Origin: Cyanophora paradoxa CCMP329
Lineage: Eukaryota > Plantae > Glaucophyta
Direction: 5' to 3'
Assembly: GCA_004431415.1 (NCBI GenBank)
Contig: QPMI01000408.1
Location: 620,001-684,000 of the forward strand
Length of the DNA stretch: 64,000 bases
Positions 3,542 to 12,183 of this stretch are shown here, in pieces. Under the pieces are notes generated by a model. That model saw nothing but the letters and a program-made list of their open reading frames with translations. It searched no databases and was not told where the DNA came from. Made by a program: the position numbers and the translations under genes. The stretch's first letter is position 1. Each line of letters begins with the position of its first letter.

Positions 3542-4392
3542 CACAGAACCAGTCACTGAGTAGCCGCTGAGCTCCTGCCAGGCTGCTAGAAGCATTTGGA
3601 TACAATCTAAATCACAAAGTCCGGCCTGGCAGTCCAGGCTACAGTAGCTATAGCCTAGTAGTGTACATGTGGATGTATTCTGTCGCCCAGCCAGCCTGGC
3701 AGCTGCGCCGGGCCATGCTTTGCATAGCGGCCCTCTAACAGGCCCTCTAACAGGGGTGCAGCATCACGTGCATGTCTCGAGTTTAACGGTCCGACGGTCG
3801 CGTGCACAGTGCGGCCCGTGACTGCACCATAGCCACGGGGCCTCGGAGCTCAGCGGCTTGCTTGGGCATGCGCATGCATATGCATTGCAATTGGCCATGG
3901 GGCTAGCGCTGCACCTGGCCCAGTGGCCCAGCTAGCCTGAGCAGTTATGCGCTAGCGCCCCAGATCTAGAAATTCCGGCTGGCTTAAGCTTTCCAATTGC
4001 AAATTCAATGATTGGCCACAGCCTTTCTGAAGTCCGACAGTCAACGTCAGAAACAATTCAGTCAGAGGTCACCCCGGGCCCTAGGCCTTGCGCCTCTGCG
4101 CACTGCGGCATGCTAACCTGCAGCTGCGCATGCAGCTGGGGCCATCGAACGGAAAAGTGGATGCCACGGCCGGCGGTCTCATCGCCGAGTCGTCAAAGAG
4201 GCTGCGGAGGCACTCGCGATCCGCCCGGGGCACTCGCGGGGAGGCGGCGGATTGCCAGATCATGATCACCGGATCGTGATGACGGGCATAAGCACGGTCC
4301 CGGGCCTGGTGTGCACAGCGGACGGCAGCGTGACGACGGGCTACACAGATAATCCTTTCGAATGACCATGCTCTTAGGCTTGGTCTGGATGG

Positions 4393-4445
4393 TCGTAATC
4401 GTAATTCGTGGCTCCTTGATCGTAATCGTAATTCGTGGCTCCTTG
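4393..4445. repeat. 27-bp tandem duplication
   Basis: tcgtaatcgtaattcgtggctccttg twice, starting at 4393 and 4420. Confidence 0.9.
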
Positions 4446-4646
4446 GGCTTTCCATGTCTAGATCTAGCTGATCGTAACAATCAGAGCCCGAGCATCGTGA
4501 GCAAGTCGATTTCTGATTCCTGCCCCTTTTCGTCTTCGGGATTGTCTCTTCTTTCAGTATGGACGGAAAATATTATTCGAGATCCTGGCAACACATCAAC
4601 TCTAACCTCTGCACTACTAAACAGAATAAGGGCAAGGCACTCTTAA

Positions 4647-7600
4647 TTACGCTACCAACCTCGCAAGGCGCATGGTGCCAAGCAGGTTGTGCGCCGCATT
4701 CGAGTGGTCGTACACGCCACCGTTGAAGGCCTGGGTAATGTCCTTGCCGAGGTACACGTCGAGGATCTGGCAGAATGTGAGATGCGATCTAGGAGGCGTT
4801 CTAAAAAAGCGCGAAAGCGTACCGCCTTGCCGCCGGGGTGGTTCGGGACGAAATCGGTCACGTCGTGAACAAGGCCGTCGAGGATGACGAGGGCCTTCTT
4901 GGCCTCGGGGTTCTCCTTGGAGCGCGACTGGGCCTGGACCTCAGCCAGAGTCATCGTCGGGAGGGTCGCGGGGTCCGCAGCCCAGCGGACGCGGGCCTTG
5001 ATGTGGTCCAGGCGCTTCTGCTCCATCTGGATACGGCCCTTGATGACCTCGTTCTGGATCGAAGTTAACATGAGCCGCAGGGACAAGGGGCTCCCGAAGC
5101 GCGGACCTCGGGGAACTGGCGCAGGTTGTAGGTGAGGCCGAACCACGAGCAGAAGGTGATGAGCCACTTGGTCGGGTCGTACTGGTAGAACTTGATCGCG
5201 TTGCGGTAGTCGTTCGGGAACTCGTGGTGGAAGTTGTGGTAGCCCTCCCCCATGGTGAGGAGCGCGGTGAGGACCGAGTCACGCGGGGTGTGGTTGTCCG
5301 CGAAGGGCTGGGTGCCCCAGAAGTGGGCGAGCGAGTTCACAAAGAAAGTCGCGTGGTGGACGAGGACGAGACGAGCGATGCCGGCGAGCAGGAACCCCCC
5401 CTTGAAGTCGCCCCAGCCGAAGCCGGCCACGAGCGTCGGCAGGACGAACGCCATGAAAGGAGCGAACCAGTAGTAGTTGCGGTGCTGCCAGCGGACCATC
5501 GGGTCAGCGTTGAGGTCAGAAATGTCGGCCTTGCCGATCTTGGTCGGGTCCTGCTTGACGAGCATCCAGCCAAGGTGCGAGTAGAAGAAGCCGTTCTTGG
5601 CCGAGTAGGGGTCCTTGTCAGTGTCGGTGTAACGGTGGTGGGCACGGTGATCGCGCGACCACCAGCGGATCGACCCCTCGAAGGCACCAGTGCCGGCCAG
5701 CATGAGGAACAGGCGCATGGGCAGGTTCGCGTCGTACGAGCGGTGAGCGTAGAAGCGGTGGTAGCCTGGATTGCAAGGTCAGCTGCGGAGTGGCATCCAA
5801 GAATGGCCGGCGCGCTCACCAGCAGTGATGCCGAGGCCGGTGATGTAGTAGTAAATGAAGGCCCACAGGTACGTCTTCACGTTGAAGGGGCAGGTCAGAA
5901 TGCCGTACAGGCCGAGGATCGGCGTCAGGGTGAGCAGGGGGACGTGCAGCCAGTTGAGCTGCTGGTACATGCGCTGCAGGGCTCTCAGTCGCTGCGCAGC
6001 GGAACGCGGTACATCAACGACGCACGCTGCACCACTTGTCCAGAGTCTCGACGGGCTCGCTGAGAGTCTTGCCCTCACGATCATCGAAGGGAGTGTAGCA
6101 GACCTGCAAGCATCCGATAAGGAAGGCGTCCTCTCTAGTTCATAACCAAGCTACAGAGCGATGTACCTTCTCGTTGTACAGGTGGCACTTGTTGGTGACC
6201 TCCGAAATGAGCTGCCAAGTGAAGGTGCACTCGTGGAGGTGCTGGCATTGACGTGAGCAAACGATGACGGACGAAGCGGGTTCGTGCACAAACCTTGCCC
6301 CAGTTCTTGCGCAGCGAGGCATGCGCAAGGCGGAGGTTGTAGTGCGGGATCATAGTCGACACGTGGTGGGGCACGTGCCAGTTGATGTCATGGCACAGGA
6401 GCTCGACCCTGCCAAACGCTTCAGCGAGACATCTCGGTTCAAGGCAGCGCGAGAGATCACCAGCGAGGGTAGTCGCAGTGCACAGTGTAGTGCAGACGAG
6501 CGCGGGCATCGTCCCAAATGCCAACAGGCTCGAAAGGAATGTGGGGGAGCGTGTGGTGGATCATGGTGAAGGTGCTCATCTATTGCAGATAAGAAGAAGC
6601 TGTTGAAAAAAGGGAAGGAGCGGGCGCAAACCCAGAAGTGATAGCCGAGCCACGGCATAAGCCAGAACTTGATGAAGCCCTTCACTCGGAAGTCAGCGCA
6701 AGAACGAGAAGACTTGCTCGCATAGCTAGAGTGCGCACCCAGATGCCGAAGTTGTAGAGGATCGTGGGCCAGCCGATCAGCATGAACGCGTACACGGCCG
6801 CGAGACTGATCTTCACACGCGTGTGGTCCTTCGCCTCGAAGTTCTCCAGGAAGAAGTGCTCCTTGATCCTACAAGCCAAGTCATGTGGGGTCGGCTAAGG
6901 TGCAGAAGGGGGGCGGCGTTCGACGAACCAGTGGCCGACGGAAGCGAACCACCACATCGGGCCCTTAATAAGCCGCATGAAGGTCTGCATGACGGGATTC
7001 TGGTCATCAAACCACTCCGCGCGAATCGGCTGCCACGCGTTGTCGACGTCCAGCCTGCGCGGGCGTGAGATAGACCGGAGAGGCGCCGAAGGCACAATTC
7101 CGTACTTGTTCGTGTTCTTGTGGTGGAAGTCGTGCTTAATGCGCCACGGCTCATAGGGATACACGAGCGGGGACATCATGATGGTGCCCAGCACGTCATT
7201 CAGAAGGCTGCACGTGCGGCGCGGTGAGTGGGCTGATGGTCGGGCGGGGAACGGCAAAAACGAGCGTTTGAATGTGTACCTGCTCTTTGTGAAACAGCGG
7301 TGAGCGCAGTCGTGGCCGATGACGAACATCTGCGCGCGAAAATGTCGGCAACAGCAGGCGGGGAAGCGGCAGAGTCTCCGCACCCCAGTGGAGGCCGTTC
7401 CTGCGATAGCCCAGGCGATGGGAAGCATGTACCACGGAAGAACGTGGATGAGGAACATGCTGAAGCACATGGCGATGACGGTCACCATGGTCGTCTGCGC
7501 GGCCTTGACGTAGCTCTTTTCAAAGGCCTACCAAATCGTCGAAATGATCAAAATCAAGCTCGCCCAGACGAAATACGCAGGCGCGCCGCACCTCCTTCGG

Positions 7601-7774
7601 CAGAGTCTTGATGATGTCCGAGAGTTCCGTCCCCGGAGGAAGTGGCTCAGGGTGCGCGTTGGAGAAGCACTCGGCGGGGGCATAGTAAACGTGATCGGGC
7701 TTCCCCTCCTCGTGATGGTCGATCTCCGACAGGTCCGAAATGGTCGGAGCGACCGTGGACGCGTTGGGAGCCAT
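4647..7774 (-). CDS. Fatty acid desaturase fusion: DesA/FAD6-type omega-6 (delta-12) desaturase + OLE1-type delta-9 acyl-CoA desaturase + C-terminal cytochrome b5
   Basis: Delta-12 part has His boxes GHDCAH, HDFHH, WHVPHH and FAD6-like [18 protein letters not shown] and [14 protein letters not shown]. Delta-9 part has [44 protein letters not shown]. The b5 part has [36 protein letters not shown]. Joined in frame through introns 6104-6166 and 5974-6025. ATG 7774, TAA 4647-4649. Confidence 0.85.
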
Positions 7775-7892
7775 TGCTGTTACTGGGACGGTATGCTCAA
7801 GGCGAACGAGGCGCGCCCAAGGGCGGCCGAGAGAACTGCGGGTGAACCCGCGACACGCGCAAACTGCTTGCTGATTTGCAAGGACTGTACCC

Positions 7893-8145
7893 TTGACGCG
7901 TAGCGAGGGGTACGTCACTCGGGGGCAGGTTGACGTCGGACTCAGAGAAACTATGGAATTCGAATTCGAATTCGAAGTTCGCAATTCGGTCGACGTCGAA
8001 GTCGAAGCTTAAGGCGCGCGCGCGGCGCCGGCACCGCGGCGCGCGCGCGCGATGCAGGCTGATGATGCAGCTGCATGCGCGCGTATGCGCAAGGGGCTGC
8101 TGACGTCGGCGCGCGCGCGCCGCGCGCGCGCGGCGCCGCTGATCA
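7893..8145. repeat. Dispersed intergenic element, copy A (upstream of desaturase fusion)
   Basis: Core cgaggggtacgtcactcgggggcaggttgacgtcggact..gagaaact..atggaa..ttcgaa..cggcgccgctgatca is shared with 11945-12183. Confidence 0.8.
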
Positions 8146-8317
8146 AGGGGGAAGGGGACGGAGTGCAACGTGTGCCGCGCGGGCTTCTTCTGCCGCCGCA
8201 GCCGCCGGACTCTGACGGAGGCGGGCGCGACGGCGTGCAAGGGCTGCGAGGAGGCGCAGCTCTGCCCCCTGGTGCCTCTGATTCCCCGCGGCCCGTGAGA
8301 GGGGAGAGCTGCAGCTG

Positions 8318-11300
8318 ATGGCGGCGGGCGCAGGCGACGTCGCAGCCGATCGACCCCTCCTTCTTCCGCAGCCTCGTGGGGCAGGCCGCGCTGGACCTCG
8401 GCGGCCTGCGCGCCGGGTCCGCTCTGCGGCCCGCGCCTCTGCACGCGCTCTGCGGCTCACGTCTCTGCAGGAGTCGGCTGCGCGCGCTGTGGGGCGCACG
8501 CAGGGGCCTGCTCGGCGCGGCGGCGGCCGAGGTCGCGCCGCCCGCGGCGCAGGAGGAGGTGACGCTGCCGACGGAGGAGGTCGTGTACGACACGAACGCC
8601 GCCAACGTCAGCCGCGCCGTGCGCCCGGAGCCGCCGCGCGCCTCGCCGCGGCGGGCCTGAGGGCGGGGGCGCAGGCGATCCGGACGGAGCAGGCGGCGCT
8701 CCAGCGGCTCTACCGCATCGGGGGCGGCCTCGCGGGGGCCGTCGGGGGCCTCCTCCTCCTCGCCGGCCTCGCCGCCGCCTGCTACATCCGCCGCGGCCTC
8801 CCCGTCCGCCCCGTTTTCTTCTTCGGGGATCGGAGCGGCCCTCTCCGAGCCCCGCGGCAGGTCCGGCCCCGCTGGCGCCCGGCGCAGGGCACCGCCGCGG
8901 CGGACGCGGAGGCGAGGGAGGCGAGGCGGCTGGAGCGGCGGACCACGGTGCGCGCGCCTGCTGGACCCCTCTAGATCTCGGCCGAGCGCTCGCGGCCGCG
9001 AGCGCGACCCGCGCGCGGCAGCTGGCGAAGCTCGACCTGCTCTTCACGGAGGACGTCGCGGAGGCCAAGCGGCCCCTCGCCGAGCGAGTCGCGGCGCGGA
9101 GGGCGCAGCGGGCGGCGGAGGCGGAGCGGGCCGCGCCGGCGGGCGGCGGGCCTCCGGATCCGGGGCGGACGTGGCGATCGTGTCGAAGAGCGGGATGGCG
9201 GACCTCCTGCAGATCGCCCTCGACGAGCGGCCCGCGGACCCGCCCTCGCCGCGCGCCGCCGGGGAGCCGCGCGGGGTCCTTGGGCGCCGGAGGAGAGTCC
9301 GAAGTCCGTTGCGGGCGCCGTCGCGACCCTCGTCGCCATCGGCCTCGCCCTCCTCGCCGGTGCGCCCGCCGCGCCTTGCGTCCACTCGCAGCTTTCGCGC
9401 CTCTCGGGCTGACGCCTTCCCCGCGCAGCGGCCTTCGTCATACTGCAATTCGTGCGGGCGGCCCGCCTGCGGCCCCGCGCCCGCCGCTCACGCCAGGCCG
9501 CGCGCAGGCGATCGCGAACTACGAAGTGGTGCAAACTCTGCTGCCCGGCACGTCGCCCTCGGCGGGGGCGATCGCTGGCCCCGTCGAGGTCTCCGCCAGC
9601 TTCCTCGGCTGGTCCGGTGCGCCCCTCGAGCTCGCACGACCCCCGCCTGCCGCGGCTCGTTTGACGCCGCGGCCAGCGGCGCGCGCGTGCGTCGTGCGGC
9701 GGGAGGCGGCAGTGAACAGCTCGGGCTCCCTCGGGGCGGCGAACGCGACGGAGGAGGGGGCGGTCGTCACCTGGCGCAACATCGTCCCCGTCGGCGGGTC
9801 GCCCCCGCCCGCCGCCACTGCCGCCTACGACGCCTCCCAGCGCGCCTGCCTGTGCGCCCCCGCGCTCCCCCGCTGCCCGCGGCGCCTCGCTCACGGGGCG
9901 CAGGGTGACGTGGCGCTGCGAGCTGTGCCGGGTCGCGTCGACGGCGGACGCGGCGGTCGACTTCCGCCGCGTCGCCCGCCTCGCCCGCGCTTTCGCCCTC
10001 CGCTACTCTGTCAGGGTGCCTTTTTTGTTGCAGCTCCTCGAGCGGAGCCAGGCTGAGGCCGCGCAGGTCCCTGCGTACGCTGCGATCAGCGGCGCGGTGA
10101 CGACGCACGCCGGCGCGTCGGGGCGGCTGACGGTCTTCCGCGGCACGCGGCCCGTGACCGTCCCCGTCCTCCTCACGCCGCTGCACTTCGAGAACGAGGC
10201 GGACGGGCGGCCGCAGTACGACGCGGCGCTGCAGCAGGCCGACAACCGCCCCTCCGAGCTCGACGAAACCTCCTTCGTGCGCGGGGGAGGGGAGCGCGGC
10301 CTTCGCGGCGGAGGACCTGACCGGAGCCGCGCGCAGGGCCTCTGCTCGCTGACGCGGCAGCTGTCGGAGCCCGAGTGCGCTGTGGAGGCGGTCGGCTTCC
10401 GCGCCGCCCTCGGCGTCAACGACGTCTACCTCCTCGTCCGCCCCCCCGCCCGCCACACCCGCCCGGCGCGGCTGACGGGCCGCAGGTGTCGCGGGTGACG
10501 TGGGCGAGCGCGCTGGGGACGCGCTGGCGGACGTCGCGTCGCTGGCGGGCACCGCCCTCGCCCTCGGCGGTCAGCTCGTCGTCTCCTACTACGCCGCCCT
10601 CAGCGCCTACGCCGTCCGCCCGCTCCCCTCGCCTCGCCGCTCGCTGCTGACGCCGGGGGTTGCAGATGCGCCGCGAGATCCTGGAGCGGGTCGGGCGGCT
10701 GCCGGCCGCGGGGGAGGCGAGAAGCGGGCCGCACCCCTCAACGCCCTTCCGGCGACCGCGCCGCCCGCGCCGCCGCCGCAGGCGACCGCGACCAAGGCCG
10801 CGCGGTCGGGCAGCCTCGCCGCCGGCGCCGGCCTGCAGGCGGACTCCGAAGCCTCGCGCCCGGCCGCTTCGCGGACCCCCCTGCCCGCGGCCGCGCCTCC
10901 CATCCGGCGCGCGCGGGCCGCCTCAATGGTCGAGACCGGCCACCACGCGCCGCCGTCGGGGCCGGAGCCGCCGCCCGTCCGGCGCGCGCGGACGGCGTCG
11001 ATGGTCGAGATCGCCCTCGCCGCGCAGGCCGCGCTCTCGAGGCCGCCGGGGCCCCCGTCCGAGCAGCTGACGCCCCACGGCATCCGCCAGGGCCGCTCGA
11101 ACTCCCTCCCGCTCCTCTTACCCCGCGCCGCGGCCCGCGTCTCGCCCCGAGCCCGTGCCGCCTCTCGCCAGCGCCACCCCCGCGCAGTCCAGGCCGCCGT
11201 CGACCGACGCAGCCGCGGCCGCGGCGGCGGCGCAGGCGGCGGGCGGCGCCCGGGCGCTCGTGCGGCGGTAAAGCTTCCTCAGGCCGGGCTTCCCGCTCGG

Positions 11301-11602
11301 CAGCCTCGGCCTCGGCGCTGGCGCCGGCGTCAATTGCGAGCGCGCCGCAGCCGCGCTCGGGGGCCGCGCTGCCGGCGGCGGGCAGCTCGCGCCGGCACAG
11401 CGTCGTGCAGGCGGTCGTCATCGACGACCGCCGCGCCGAGCCGGACTTGGGCCGGCCGCAGCCTCCCCGCTCCCTGCCTCTCCTCTCCCCACTCTGGGCC
11501 GGCGCCGAGGGCCCCGCGCCGCCGGCCGCCGGGACGCCGGGAGAGGATGCGGAGGCTGCTCCGCCTGCCGTCCAGACTTCGACGCCCGCGAAAGGCCACT
11601 GA
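8318..11602 (+). CDS. Hypothetical multi-exon membrane protein
   Basis: Successive exon-like frames bounded by gt..cag with hydrophobic segments (GGGLAGAVGGLLLLAGLAAACYI; VAGAVATLVAIGLALLA; ALADVASLAGTALALGGQLVVSYYAAL) and a Pro-rich tail. No recognised family; boundaries uncertain. Confidence 0.5.
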
Positions 11603-11944
11603 CACTCCCGAATCCACACCAGATTATAATTAAGCTCCCCTTAAAGCTTGCATCATAAGCTAGCATGACAATCTCCCCCACTCTAGTTTAATTCTTTTCT
11701 TTAGATATCTAAGATTTAAGATATCTTAAGCTTTGATTTTAGATCTTCTGCTGATTCATTTGCTTGTTGTAGTCTGCTCCAGCTTGAATTGTCCCCTAGA
11801 GGCCTCAGCTACGTCCAGCTATCGCCAGCTATTCACAGTCTAGCTCTAATCTTCTTCTAGATCTGCCGCTTCGAGATTAACAAGAGATCCCTGCGGAGCA
11901 GGAGTGACCTTGGGGGCATGGGGGAAGGGGGCTTAAGCTTGCAA

Positions 11945-12183
11945 TTGACACAGCTCGAGGGGTACGTGACTCGGGGGCAGGGTTGACGTCGGACTTGCCA
12001 AGTTGAGAAACTTGTACGTATACTATGGAACTTCGGAATTCGAATCATTGAATTCGAAGTTCGGAATTCGGAAGCCTTGCAATTGAAGGCGCCAAATTAA
12101 ATATGTCCTGCTTTACAGCTGGCCCAGTGGCAGCAGCGATCATCGGAGCAGCCTGGCAGCCTGGCAGCCGGCGCCGCTGATCA
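11945..12183. repeat. Dispersed intergenic element, copy B, with palindromic insertions
   Basis: cgaggggtacgtgactcgggggcagggttgacgtcggact aligns to copy A, with additional short inserts. Confidence 0.8.

Follow-up and report, generated by a model that had tools for sequence, protein, structure and literature searches.

At positions 7774-4647, on the minus strand, of a 64,000-nucleotide stretch of the genome of the glaucophyte alga Cyanophora paradoxa CCMP329 (contig QPMI01000408.1, positions 620,001 to 684,000; the whole stretch is called the window below) lies a single nuclear gene, transcribed into one mRNA of ~2.5 kilobases, for a 777-residue membrane protein with three modules: a desaturase of the FAD6/DesA type (N module), a delta-9 desaturase of the OLE1/SCD type (C module) and a cytochrome b5 domain. 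The spliced model is identical, letter for letter, to the public C. paradoxa protein tig00020553_g10659.t1 (P0173; 777 amino acids), and a tblastn search of the window with P0173 covered all 777 residues at 100% identity in single-exon segments. The gene model is thus already in the public annotation and is not new; what appears to be new is the recognition of its architecture, of a glaucophyte form in which both desaturases are apparently active, and of decayed relatives. No double-desaturase fusion was described in the searchable literature, a search outside which many subscription papers lie. A first-pass annotation of the window had proposed one polypeptide with delta-12-type, delta-9-type and b5 modules, and the single open frame, the spliced contigs and the Pfam matches presented below bear this out. 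We regard it as highly probable that the gene and its protein are a genuine fusion with two intact desaturase modules. The gene comprises the following features.

7774-4647, minus strand: complete coding sequence of the fusion gene, with 15 exons, 14 introns, 777 codons and a stop codon (exon model and match to P0173)
4547..7882, minus strand: minimum extent of the transcript, with 5' and 3' untranslated regions of at least 108 and at least 100 nucleotides (nt), respectively (contig ends)
7774, minus strand: start codon ATG
7774-7592, 7527-7384, 7329-7280, 7207-7106 and 7054-6929, minus strand: exons 1-5
6868-6739, 6679-6632, 6579-6461, 6408-6294 and 6241-6167, minus strand: exons 6-10
7774-6167, minus strand: exons 1-10 taken together, residues 1-364, FAD6/DesA-type module (splice joints, identity to FAD6/DesA, Pfam)
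7300..7314, minus strand: His box 1 of the N module, HDCAH, residues 115-119 (motif location and alignment)
7120..7134, minus strand: His box 2 of the N module, HDFHH, residues 151-155 (motif location and alignment)
6363..6377, minus strand: His box 3 of the N module, HVPHH, residues 312-316 (motif location and alignment)
6166-6104, minus strand: intron 10, GT..AG, 63 nt, spliced out in contigs of 4/4 runs
6103-6026, minus strand: exon 11, the bridge exon, 26 codons, residues 365-390
6025-5974, minus strand: intron 11, the linker intron, 52 nt, GTGCGT..CTGAG..CAG, phase 0, spliced out in 4/4 runs
5973-5820 and 5765-5107, minus strand: exons 12-13, OLE1/SCD-type delta-9 desaturase module
5760-5743, minus strand: His box HRFYAH of the C module, residue 444
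5649-5635, minus strand: His box HRAHH of the C module, residue 481
5238-5224, minus strand: His box HNFHH of the C module, residue 618
5053-4823 and 4766-4647, minus strand: exons 14-15, hinge helix and cytochrome b5 domain (Pfam Cyt-b5, Protein Data Bank (PDB) matches, contig joints)
4840-4829, minus strand: HPGG motif of cytochrome b5, residue 733
4649-4647, minus strand: stop codon TAA

All 14 introns are 51-72 nt long, begin with GT, end with AG and contain a branch site resembling CT(G/C)A(C/G), and the linker intron is unremarkable among them, its length and splice sites resembling those of the other 13. Position 6167 is the last nucleotide of exon 10, which ends in CHLYNEK. The first-pass annotation had correctly delimited the intron that follows (6166-6104), the 26-codon exon (6103-6026) and the linker intron (6025-5974), both introns being skipped in RNA contigs, and it had also correctly joined the bridge exon in phase 0 to the delta-9 part at 5973, as in our exon model. 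If the linker intron were retained, the reading frame would meet a TGA at 6016-6014, 9 nt into the intron, and the predicted product would end in ...DKWCSVRR. The gap between this stop codon and the first Met codon of the delta-9 part (5970-5968, an ATG 3 nt past the intron), which had been put at about 45 nt, was counted as 43 nt. The three His boxes claimed for each module, six in all, were located, as was the HPGG motif at residue 733. An exon-by-exon Pfam search placed FA_desaturase in exons 4, 9 and 13 and Cyt-b5 in exon 14.

The two halves of the gene differ in composition. Ten introns interrupt the 1170 nt that code for the FAD6/DesA-type half and three the 1161 nt that code for the delta-9/b5 half, intron 11 being placed exactly at the border of the two, and the G+C content of third codon positions is 0.84 in the former half and 0.91 in the latter. 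This contrast may reflect separate histories of the two halves. It can also be observed that the stop codon inside the linker intron sits ~20 residues past Y.PFD, about where stand-alone FAD6/DesA proteins end. The idea that the linker intron is a relic of an old gene end turned intron is speculative, since the fusion predates the glaucophyte radiation.

That the two halves are joined in the mature transcript is supported by public sequencing data. The stretch is contained in 20 public runs of one organism. Four runs of one sample contain 0.73-1.00 of the sampled words and are presumably genomic DNA. The other 16, RNA-like or untyped and coming from 8 studies, contain 0.58-0.61, where ~0.62 is expected with all 14 introns removed. 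Contigs of four RNA-like runs, each from a different study, were placed on positions 4300-8100; the RNA nature of these runs was a guess, although intron-free contigs cannot derive from the genomic DNA. Every one of the predicted joints (14/14) was found in these contigs, each with GT..AG ends on the minus strand, and the joints 6167/6103 and 6026/5973 were present in 4/4 runs. The splice from 6026 to 5973, on which the fusion proposed in the first-pass annotation hinged, was therefore seen in all four studies. In run X2, contig 7 (2465 nt) extends from 7840 to 4582 in one piece with every intron gone. No contig of the four runs retained the linker intron (5974-6025), and at the module boundary neither a contig break nor a loose end was found in them. 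Contigs end at 7840-7882 and at 4547-4585, and in run X1 an Illumina adapter adjoins 7882 and 4547. At the joint of exons 12 and 13 (5764/5819), the contigs of three runs out of four are broken, with overlaps of 10-17 nt that bear spliced sequence; these breaks probably result from an assembly branch combined with 3' bias. With 14 of 14 joints recovered and a public protein, predicted independently, identical to the model, a chance coincidence can be discounted.

Family relationships were searched with single exons and then with P0173, which has the same sequence as the model. Residues 1-390 of P0173 are 48-57% identical to chloroplast omega-6 desaturases (FAD6) of land plants and green algae and to DesA-sized proteins of ~350 amino acids (E values of 1e-120 to 1e-143). 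A scan of prokaryotes, with one genome per species, gave 594 confirmed loci; the best 80 of these share 46-53% identity over residues ~40-376, and the named ones among the 80 are nearly all cyanobacteria. The family His-box pattern HDC(A/G)H, HxxHH and H(I/V)PHH is present, and the boxes align with those of 33 stand-alone FAD6/DesA proteins. In an unrooted tree, built without an FAD2 or FAD3 outgroup, the N module groups with the stand-alone FAD6/DesA proteins (Shimodaira-Hasegawa-like approximate likelihood ratio test, SH-aLRT, 95). The FAD6/DesA type first assigned to this module is thus upheld by its identity to chloroplast omega-6 desaturases and by the cyanobacterial best loci. The C-terminal tail of the family, CH(L/V/I)Y..Y.PFD, is uninterrupted in stand-alone FAD6/DesA proteins and is split here by intron 10. 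As the start of the bridge exon (VCYTPFD) is the end of this tail and its remainder is linker, the exon is the true end of the delta-12 module followed by a short linker.

Glaucophyte transit peptides are basic or hydroxylated and have an N-proximal phenylalanine. The N-terminus of the fusion is acidic, with 10 aspartate and glutamate residues versus 3 lysine and arginine residues among the first 60 and the first phenylalanine at position 37, which agrees with the earlier remark that it is unlike a transit peptide. We call the module "FAD6/DesA-type" rather than "a FAD6" because this N-terminus, the fused b5 and published TargetP results (see below) suggest another location and another donor; the plastid or cyanobacterial location and the ferredoxin donor usual for the family would then be features that the N module does not share. 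The nearest solved structure to the N module is PDB 8xks chain K (E = 7.5e-41, residues 30-372). Docking of the N module (residues 50-372) with b5 (residues 686-777) and heme gave a score of 0.00, which was counted neither for nor against an interaction.

The second half of the protein resembles well-known enzymes. FA_desaturase is matched in the delta-9 module with an E value of 9.5e-18, residues 397-664 match the structures 4zyo and 4ymk of SCD1 from mouse and human (E values of 1e-67 and 6e-66), and the His-box pattern HRxxxH, HRxHH and HNxHH of the OLE1/SCD type is present. The b5 domain is matched by Pfam PF00173 in exon 14 and by PDB cytochrome b5 structures over residues 689-777. The SCD1 structure matches, Pfam and the motifs concur in confirming the prediction of an OLE1-type delta-9 desaturase with a C-terminal, HPGG-bearing b5 domain. 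Were the delta-9 module a separate protein, it would begin 5 residues ahead of the first conserved motif, where the aligned stand-alone relatives have ~40 or more. From these comparisons, the modules can be delimited at residues ~40-372 (DesA/FAD6 omega-6/delta-12 type), ~391-685 (OLE1/SCD type) and ~689-777 (b5). An AlphaFold2 model, made with 39 fusion proteins in the alignment, has a mean predicted local distance difference test score (pLDDT) of 81.8. Both desaturase cores are mostly above 85, and values below 50 are found only at residues 1-27, 374-381 (inside the bridge exon) and 597-599. The predicted model describes two folded modules with a short flexible link between them: a flexible linker (residues ~373-384) connects the C-terminal tail of the first module to the helix that precedes the first membrane span of the second. 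The downstream half of the bridge exon was also considered as a remnant of the N-terminal motif of fungal OLE1 (EPxTxxNW); this was rejected, as the similarity is weak and other glaucophytes lack it.

The same architecture is present in other eukaryotes. When exon 13 (219 residues) was compared with a representative library, the best matches were proteins of 677-788 amino acids, with the match starting at residue ~320-420, and not the ordinary ones of 450-500 amino acids. Pfam recognised two FA_desaturase stretches and Cyt-b5 in several such relatives. The glaucophytes Cyanoptyche gloeocystis (776 amino acids) and Gloeochaete wittrockiana (804 amino acids) have complete open reading frames (ORFs) in transcript assemblies with the same three modules and all His boxes. 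Further owners are Diphylleia rotans, the amoebozoans Stenamoeba, Clastostelium and Synstelium, Ancoracysta twista, two Paulinella species and many environmental sequences, and several dictyostelids have two paralogues each, annotated as "delta 9 fatty acid desaturase". In total, 99 proteins with the order DesA/FAD6-like domain, delta-9, b5 were gathered. The His-box pattern of the N part was counted in these 99: all three boxes are present in 5, all of them glaucophyte, boxes 1 and 2 in 10, box 1 only in 27, and none in 57. An alignment of the N parts of 45 fusion proteins with the 33 stand-alone FAD6/DesA proteins shows how the boxes were altered. The three glaucophytes have kept all three; in the Diphylleia and Stenamoeba group xVPHY replaces HxPHH in box 3; dictyostelids have NDCxH as box 1 and have lost boxes 2 and 3; Paulinella retains box 1 only and Ancoracysta none. 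Several proteins, among them P0012, P0177, P0003, P0228 and P0214, retain the DesA-like N domain though its catalytic histidines are gone. In dictyostelids, Paulinella, Ancoracysta and most environmental relatives the N domain looks like a conserved pseudo-desaturase domain, and by the same motif comparison only the glaucophyte version appears to be doubly catalytic.

The glaucophyte parts are united as a clade with short branches (SH-aLRT 97) in a tree of the N modules, and the N parts of the other fusions lie outside this clade on long branches. A tree in which all fusion N parts were united was equally good (approximately unbiased test, p-AU 0.55), and a single origin of the fusion is therefore neither rejected nor demonstrated. 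The tree of the delta-9/b5 modules likewise has a glaucophyte clade (99), to which the Diphylleia and Stenamoeba fusions are nearest, with weak support. It is unresolved at depth, and whether the fungal stand-alone enzymes have lost an N domain is undecidable from it. A search for stand-alone relatives with a dictyostelid N domain as query returned only one partial Acytostelium model, in a word index that misses distant kin.

Both ends of the polypeptide lie on the same side of the membrane in each module type, as established for SCD1 and predicted for FAD6/DesA, and a fusion of the two is therefore topologically possible. We lean towards a location of the fused protein in the endoplasmic reticulum (ER) rather than in the plastid. 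There the delta-9 module would, on balance, convert 18:0 to 18:1. The N module would then somewhat more probably than otherwise introduce the delta-12 double bond that turns 18:1 into 18:2. The fused b5, in a proposal that we favour slightly, would feed both di-iron centres, either in cis or within an oligomer. An enzyme type that is normally ferredoxin-dependent would thereby have been shifted to the electron chain of the ER, which runs from reduced nicotinamide adenine dinucleotide (NADH) to b5. To the two-step, shared-b5 mechanism as such we would give an even chance. The physiology of this alga is informative here. According to Sato et al. (2024; PMC11714747), fatty-acid synthesis is nearly absent from isolated Cyanophora plastids, and the making and desaturation of fatty acids in C. 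paradoxa are apparently cytosolic or ER-based. In that study TargetP put only FADA and one delta-15 desaturase in the chloroplast and the other desaturases outside, and label passed from 16:0 to 18:0, 18:1 and 18:2. Ten Cyanophora desaturases are listed there, and the words "fusion", "fused" and "cytochrome b5" are absent from its main text.

Several observations weigh against a doubly active fusion as the only product of the gene. The usual substrates of FAD6/DesA enzymes are lipid-bound acyl chains and their usual donor is ferredoxin, and OLE1 acts on acyl-coenzyme A (acyl-CoA); given this difference in substrate and donor, direct hand-over of the product from one module to the other is not self-evident. 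The N module has lost histidines in most relatives of the same architecture, which means that a fusion can persist without the second activity. The contigs were built from 31-letter words, so that both joints flanking the 78-nt bridge exon are not provably on one molecule, and contigs lose rare isoforms and could miss an internal start or a scarce delta-12-only form in which the intron is kept. Finally, in three of the four runs the contigs of the 3' part are 1.3 to 4.7 times as deep as those of the 5' part, as an extra 3' transcript could produce. The fusion might be real and its N module not a working delta-12 desaturase: it could be a structural or regulatory partner of the delta-9 enzyme, as is most likely the case in dictyostelids, or have another regiospecificity or substrate. 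At least one N-part His box is lacking in 94 of the 99 proteins of this architecture, and the N modules of dictyostelids, Paulinella and Ancoracysta are retained despite the loss of most catalytic histidines, so the domain has a value beyond catalysis. However, each of the three glaucophyte genera, whose branches are short, has preserved every His box of the N module; the Cyanophora module resembles plant FAD6 and cyanobacterial DesA-type enzymes (50-57% identity), the characterised members of which are active delta-12 desaturases; and 18:2 and its derivatives are of extraplastidic origin in C. paradoxa (PMC11714747). We thus consider a nonworking N module unlikely. Slightly less probable again is that the linker intron acts as a splice switch, its retention giving a delta-12-only protein and Met392 serving as the start of a delta-9-b5 protein, from the same mRNA or from an internal start, with the fusion as one of several products. 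The in-frame TGA 9 nt into the intron, the ATG 3 nt after it and the excess of 3' depth speak for such a switch. Yet the intron is absent from the contigs of all four runs, which are unbroken there, and resembles the other 13; the depth changes at 5764/5819 and within exon 13, away from the module boundary, in steps that form a 3'-to-5' gradient, which we read as 3' bias and not as a second promoter because the steps lie elsewhere than at this boundary; and other glaucophytes show a continuous ORF in transcript assemblies.

Two further explanations concern the protein itself, and both are given very little weight. The fused protein might be imported into the plastid (cyanelle), the N module working there on ferredoxin and only the delta-9 module on b5. 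The plastid or cyanobacterial type of the N module is in keeping with this, whereas enzymes of the OLE1-b5 kind reside in the ER, the N-terminus is acidic with its first phenylalanine at position 37, and both the TargetP results and the near absence of fatty-acid synthesis in isolated plastids (PMC11714747) point the other way; we judge import to be very improbable. The least probable of the four explanations is that two adjacent genes are joined by read-through or chimeric splicing and no fused protein is made. The modules are separate in most organisms, and contigs alone prove neither a single molecule nor translation. On the other hand, the spliced form is the sole assembled form in four studies and its joint is in frame, the delta-9 module would start too close to its first conserved motif (5 residues, versus ~40 or more in the aligned stand-alone relatives), and this fusion recurs in dozens of protists and, as a complete ORF, in two other glaucophytes. 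We therefore retain one gene for one fused protein with two intact desaturase modules as the preferred reading.

A broader and rather doubtful proposal is that the glaucophyte protein is the sole surviving fully active form of an ancient fusion of DesA-like, delta-9 and b5 modules that spread over several eukaryotic supergroups: a self-sufficient ER enzyme leading from 18:0 to 18:2, with one b5 serving two di-iron centres, whose first half decayed to a pseudo-enzyme partner of the delta-9 enzyme in Amoebozoa, CRuMs, Rhizaria and Ancoracysta. If this were true, a cyanobacterial-type acyl-lipid desaturase could run on cytochrome b5, and DesA-like genes would have come to non-photosynthetic eukaryotes through a transfer of the whole fusion gene, or else earlier than the plastid FAD6 lineage or independently of it.

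The surroundings of the gene have some peculiarities. A chain of short palindromes (CTTAAG, AAGCTT, GTCGAC and repeated TTCGAA/GAATTC) together with (GC)n runs occupies its 5' flank at 7955-8140, and the G+C content is 72-78% at 8001-12000 versus 58-60% within the gene. Two tandem copies of a 27-nt unit (CAAGGAGCCACGAATTACGATTACGA...) lie at 4392-4445 on the minus strand, ~100 nt beyond the 3' end of the transcript. An Rfam scan of the window gave zero matches.

The fusion of these modules has several implications. A pair of enzymes that nature has linked covalently, the first two desaturases on the route to polyunsaturated fatty acids, would be a direct test system for product channelling. 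It would likewise test whether an acyl-lipid, ferredoxin-type enzyme works on the ER b5 chain, and what sets the specificity for acyl-CoA or for a lipid head group. The decayed N domains of amoebae and other protists raise the questions of why a dead desaturase is kept before a live one and of how DesA-like genes originated in non-photosynthetic eukaryotes. For engineering, a single ORF leading from stearate to linoleate would, if true, be a compact part. The fusion fits the report that Cyanophora synthesises and desaturates fatty acids outside the plastid (PMC11714747), and provides a concrete gene for this relocation.

Comparison with known systems sets the fusion apart from each of its nearest parallels. 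Descriptions of membrane desaturases usually concern single enzymes that carry a b5 domain at most, and the fusion of OLE1 with b5 is a classical one. Proteins of 700-800 amino acids such as these would have been removed by a published filter, and this may be why they escaped notice. Residues 391-777 have the same order as the fungal Ole1/SdeA-type delta-9 acyl-CoA desaturases with a C-terminal b5, namely desaturase, hinge helix and b5 with HPGG, and share the three His boxes; delta-9-b5 enzymes of Mucoromycota, Glomeromycota and chytrids are ~50-58% identical, as measured with the close fusion relative P0002 as query. In contrast to the fungal type, a whole second desaturase here replaces the N-terminal ~40 or more residues of the aligned stand-alone relatives. 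Plant FAD6 and cyanobacterial DesA share with the N module its sequence identity, its His boxes and the tail CH(L/V/I)Y..Y.PFD. However, they are stand-alone proteins of ~350-460 amino acids, whereas the Cyanophora module has no transit peptide features and is fused upstream of an ER-type delta-9-b5 enzyme, and ferredoxin is unlikely to be its donor. The closest parallels in architecture are the dictyostelid "delta 9 fatty acid desaturases" of 692-786 amino acids (D. discoideum XP_636528.1 / Q54IE9) and the proteins of Stenamoeba, Diphylleia, Paulinella and Ancoracysta, which have the same three-part order and the delta-9 modules closest to that of Cyanophora; they differ in N domains that lack one or more His boxes and lie on long branches. 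Chlamydomonas FADL (682 amino acids), the 8xks chain K mentioned above, which belongs to the Orf2971-FtsHi chloroplast import motor, is another FAD6-like fold used outside ordinary lipid desaturation; it resembles the fusion in having this fold in a non-standard context, but its complex and its function are others and it is not fused to a delta-9 enzyme. Finally, Lou, Schwender and Shanklin reportedly proposed in 2014 that non-covalent desaturase heterodimers of plants, FAD2-FAD3 and FAD6-FAD7, channel their products. As in these heterodimers, consecutive desaturases are joined in Cyanophora, and the second could thereby receive the product of the first, channelling itself being hypothetical in this case; in contrast to them, the link in Cyanophora is covalent and joins enzymes of two classes, the acyl-CoA type and the acyl-lipid type.

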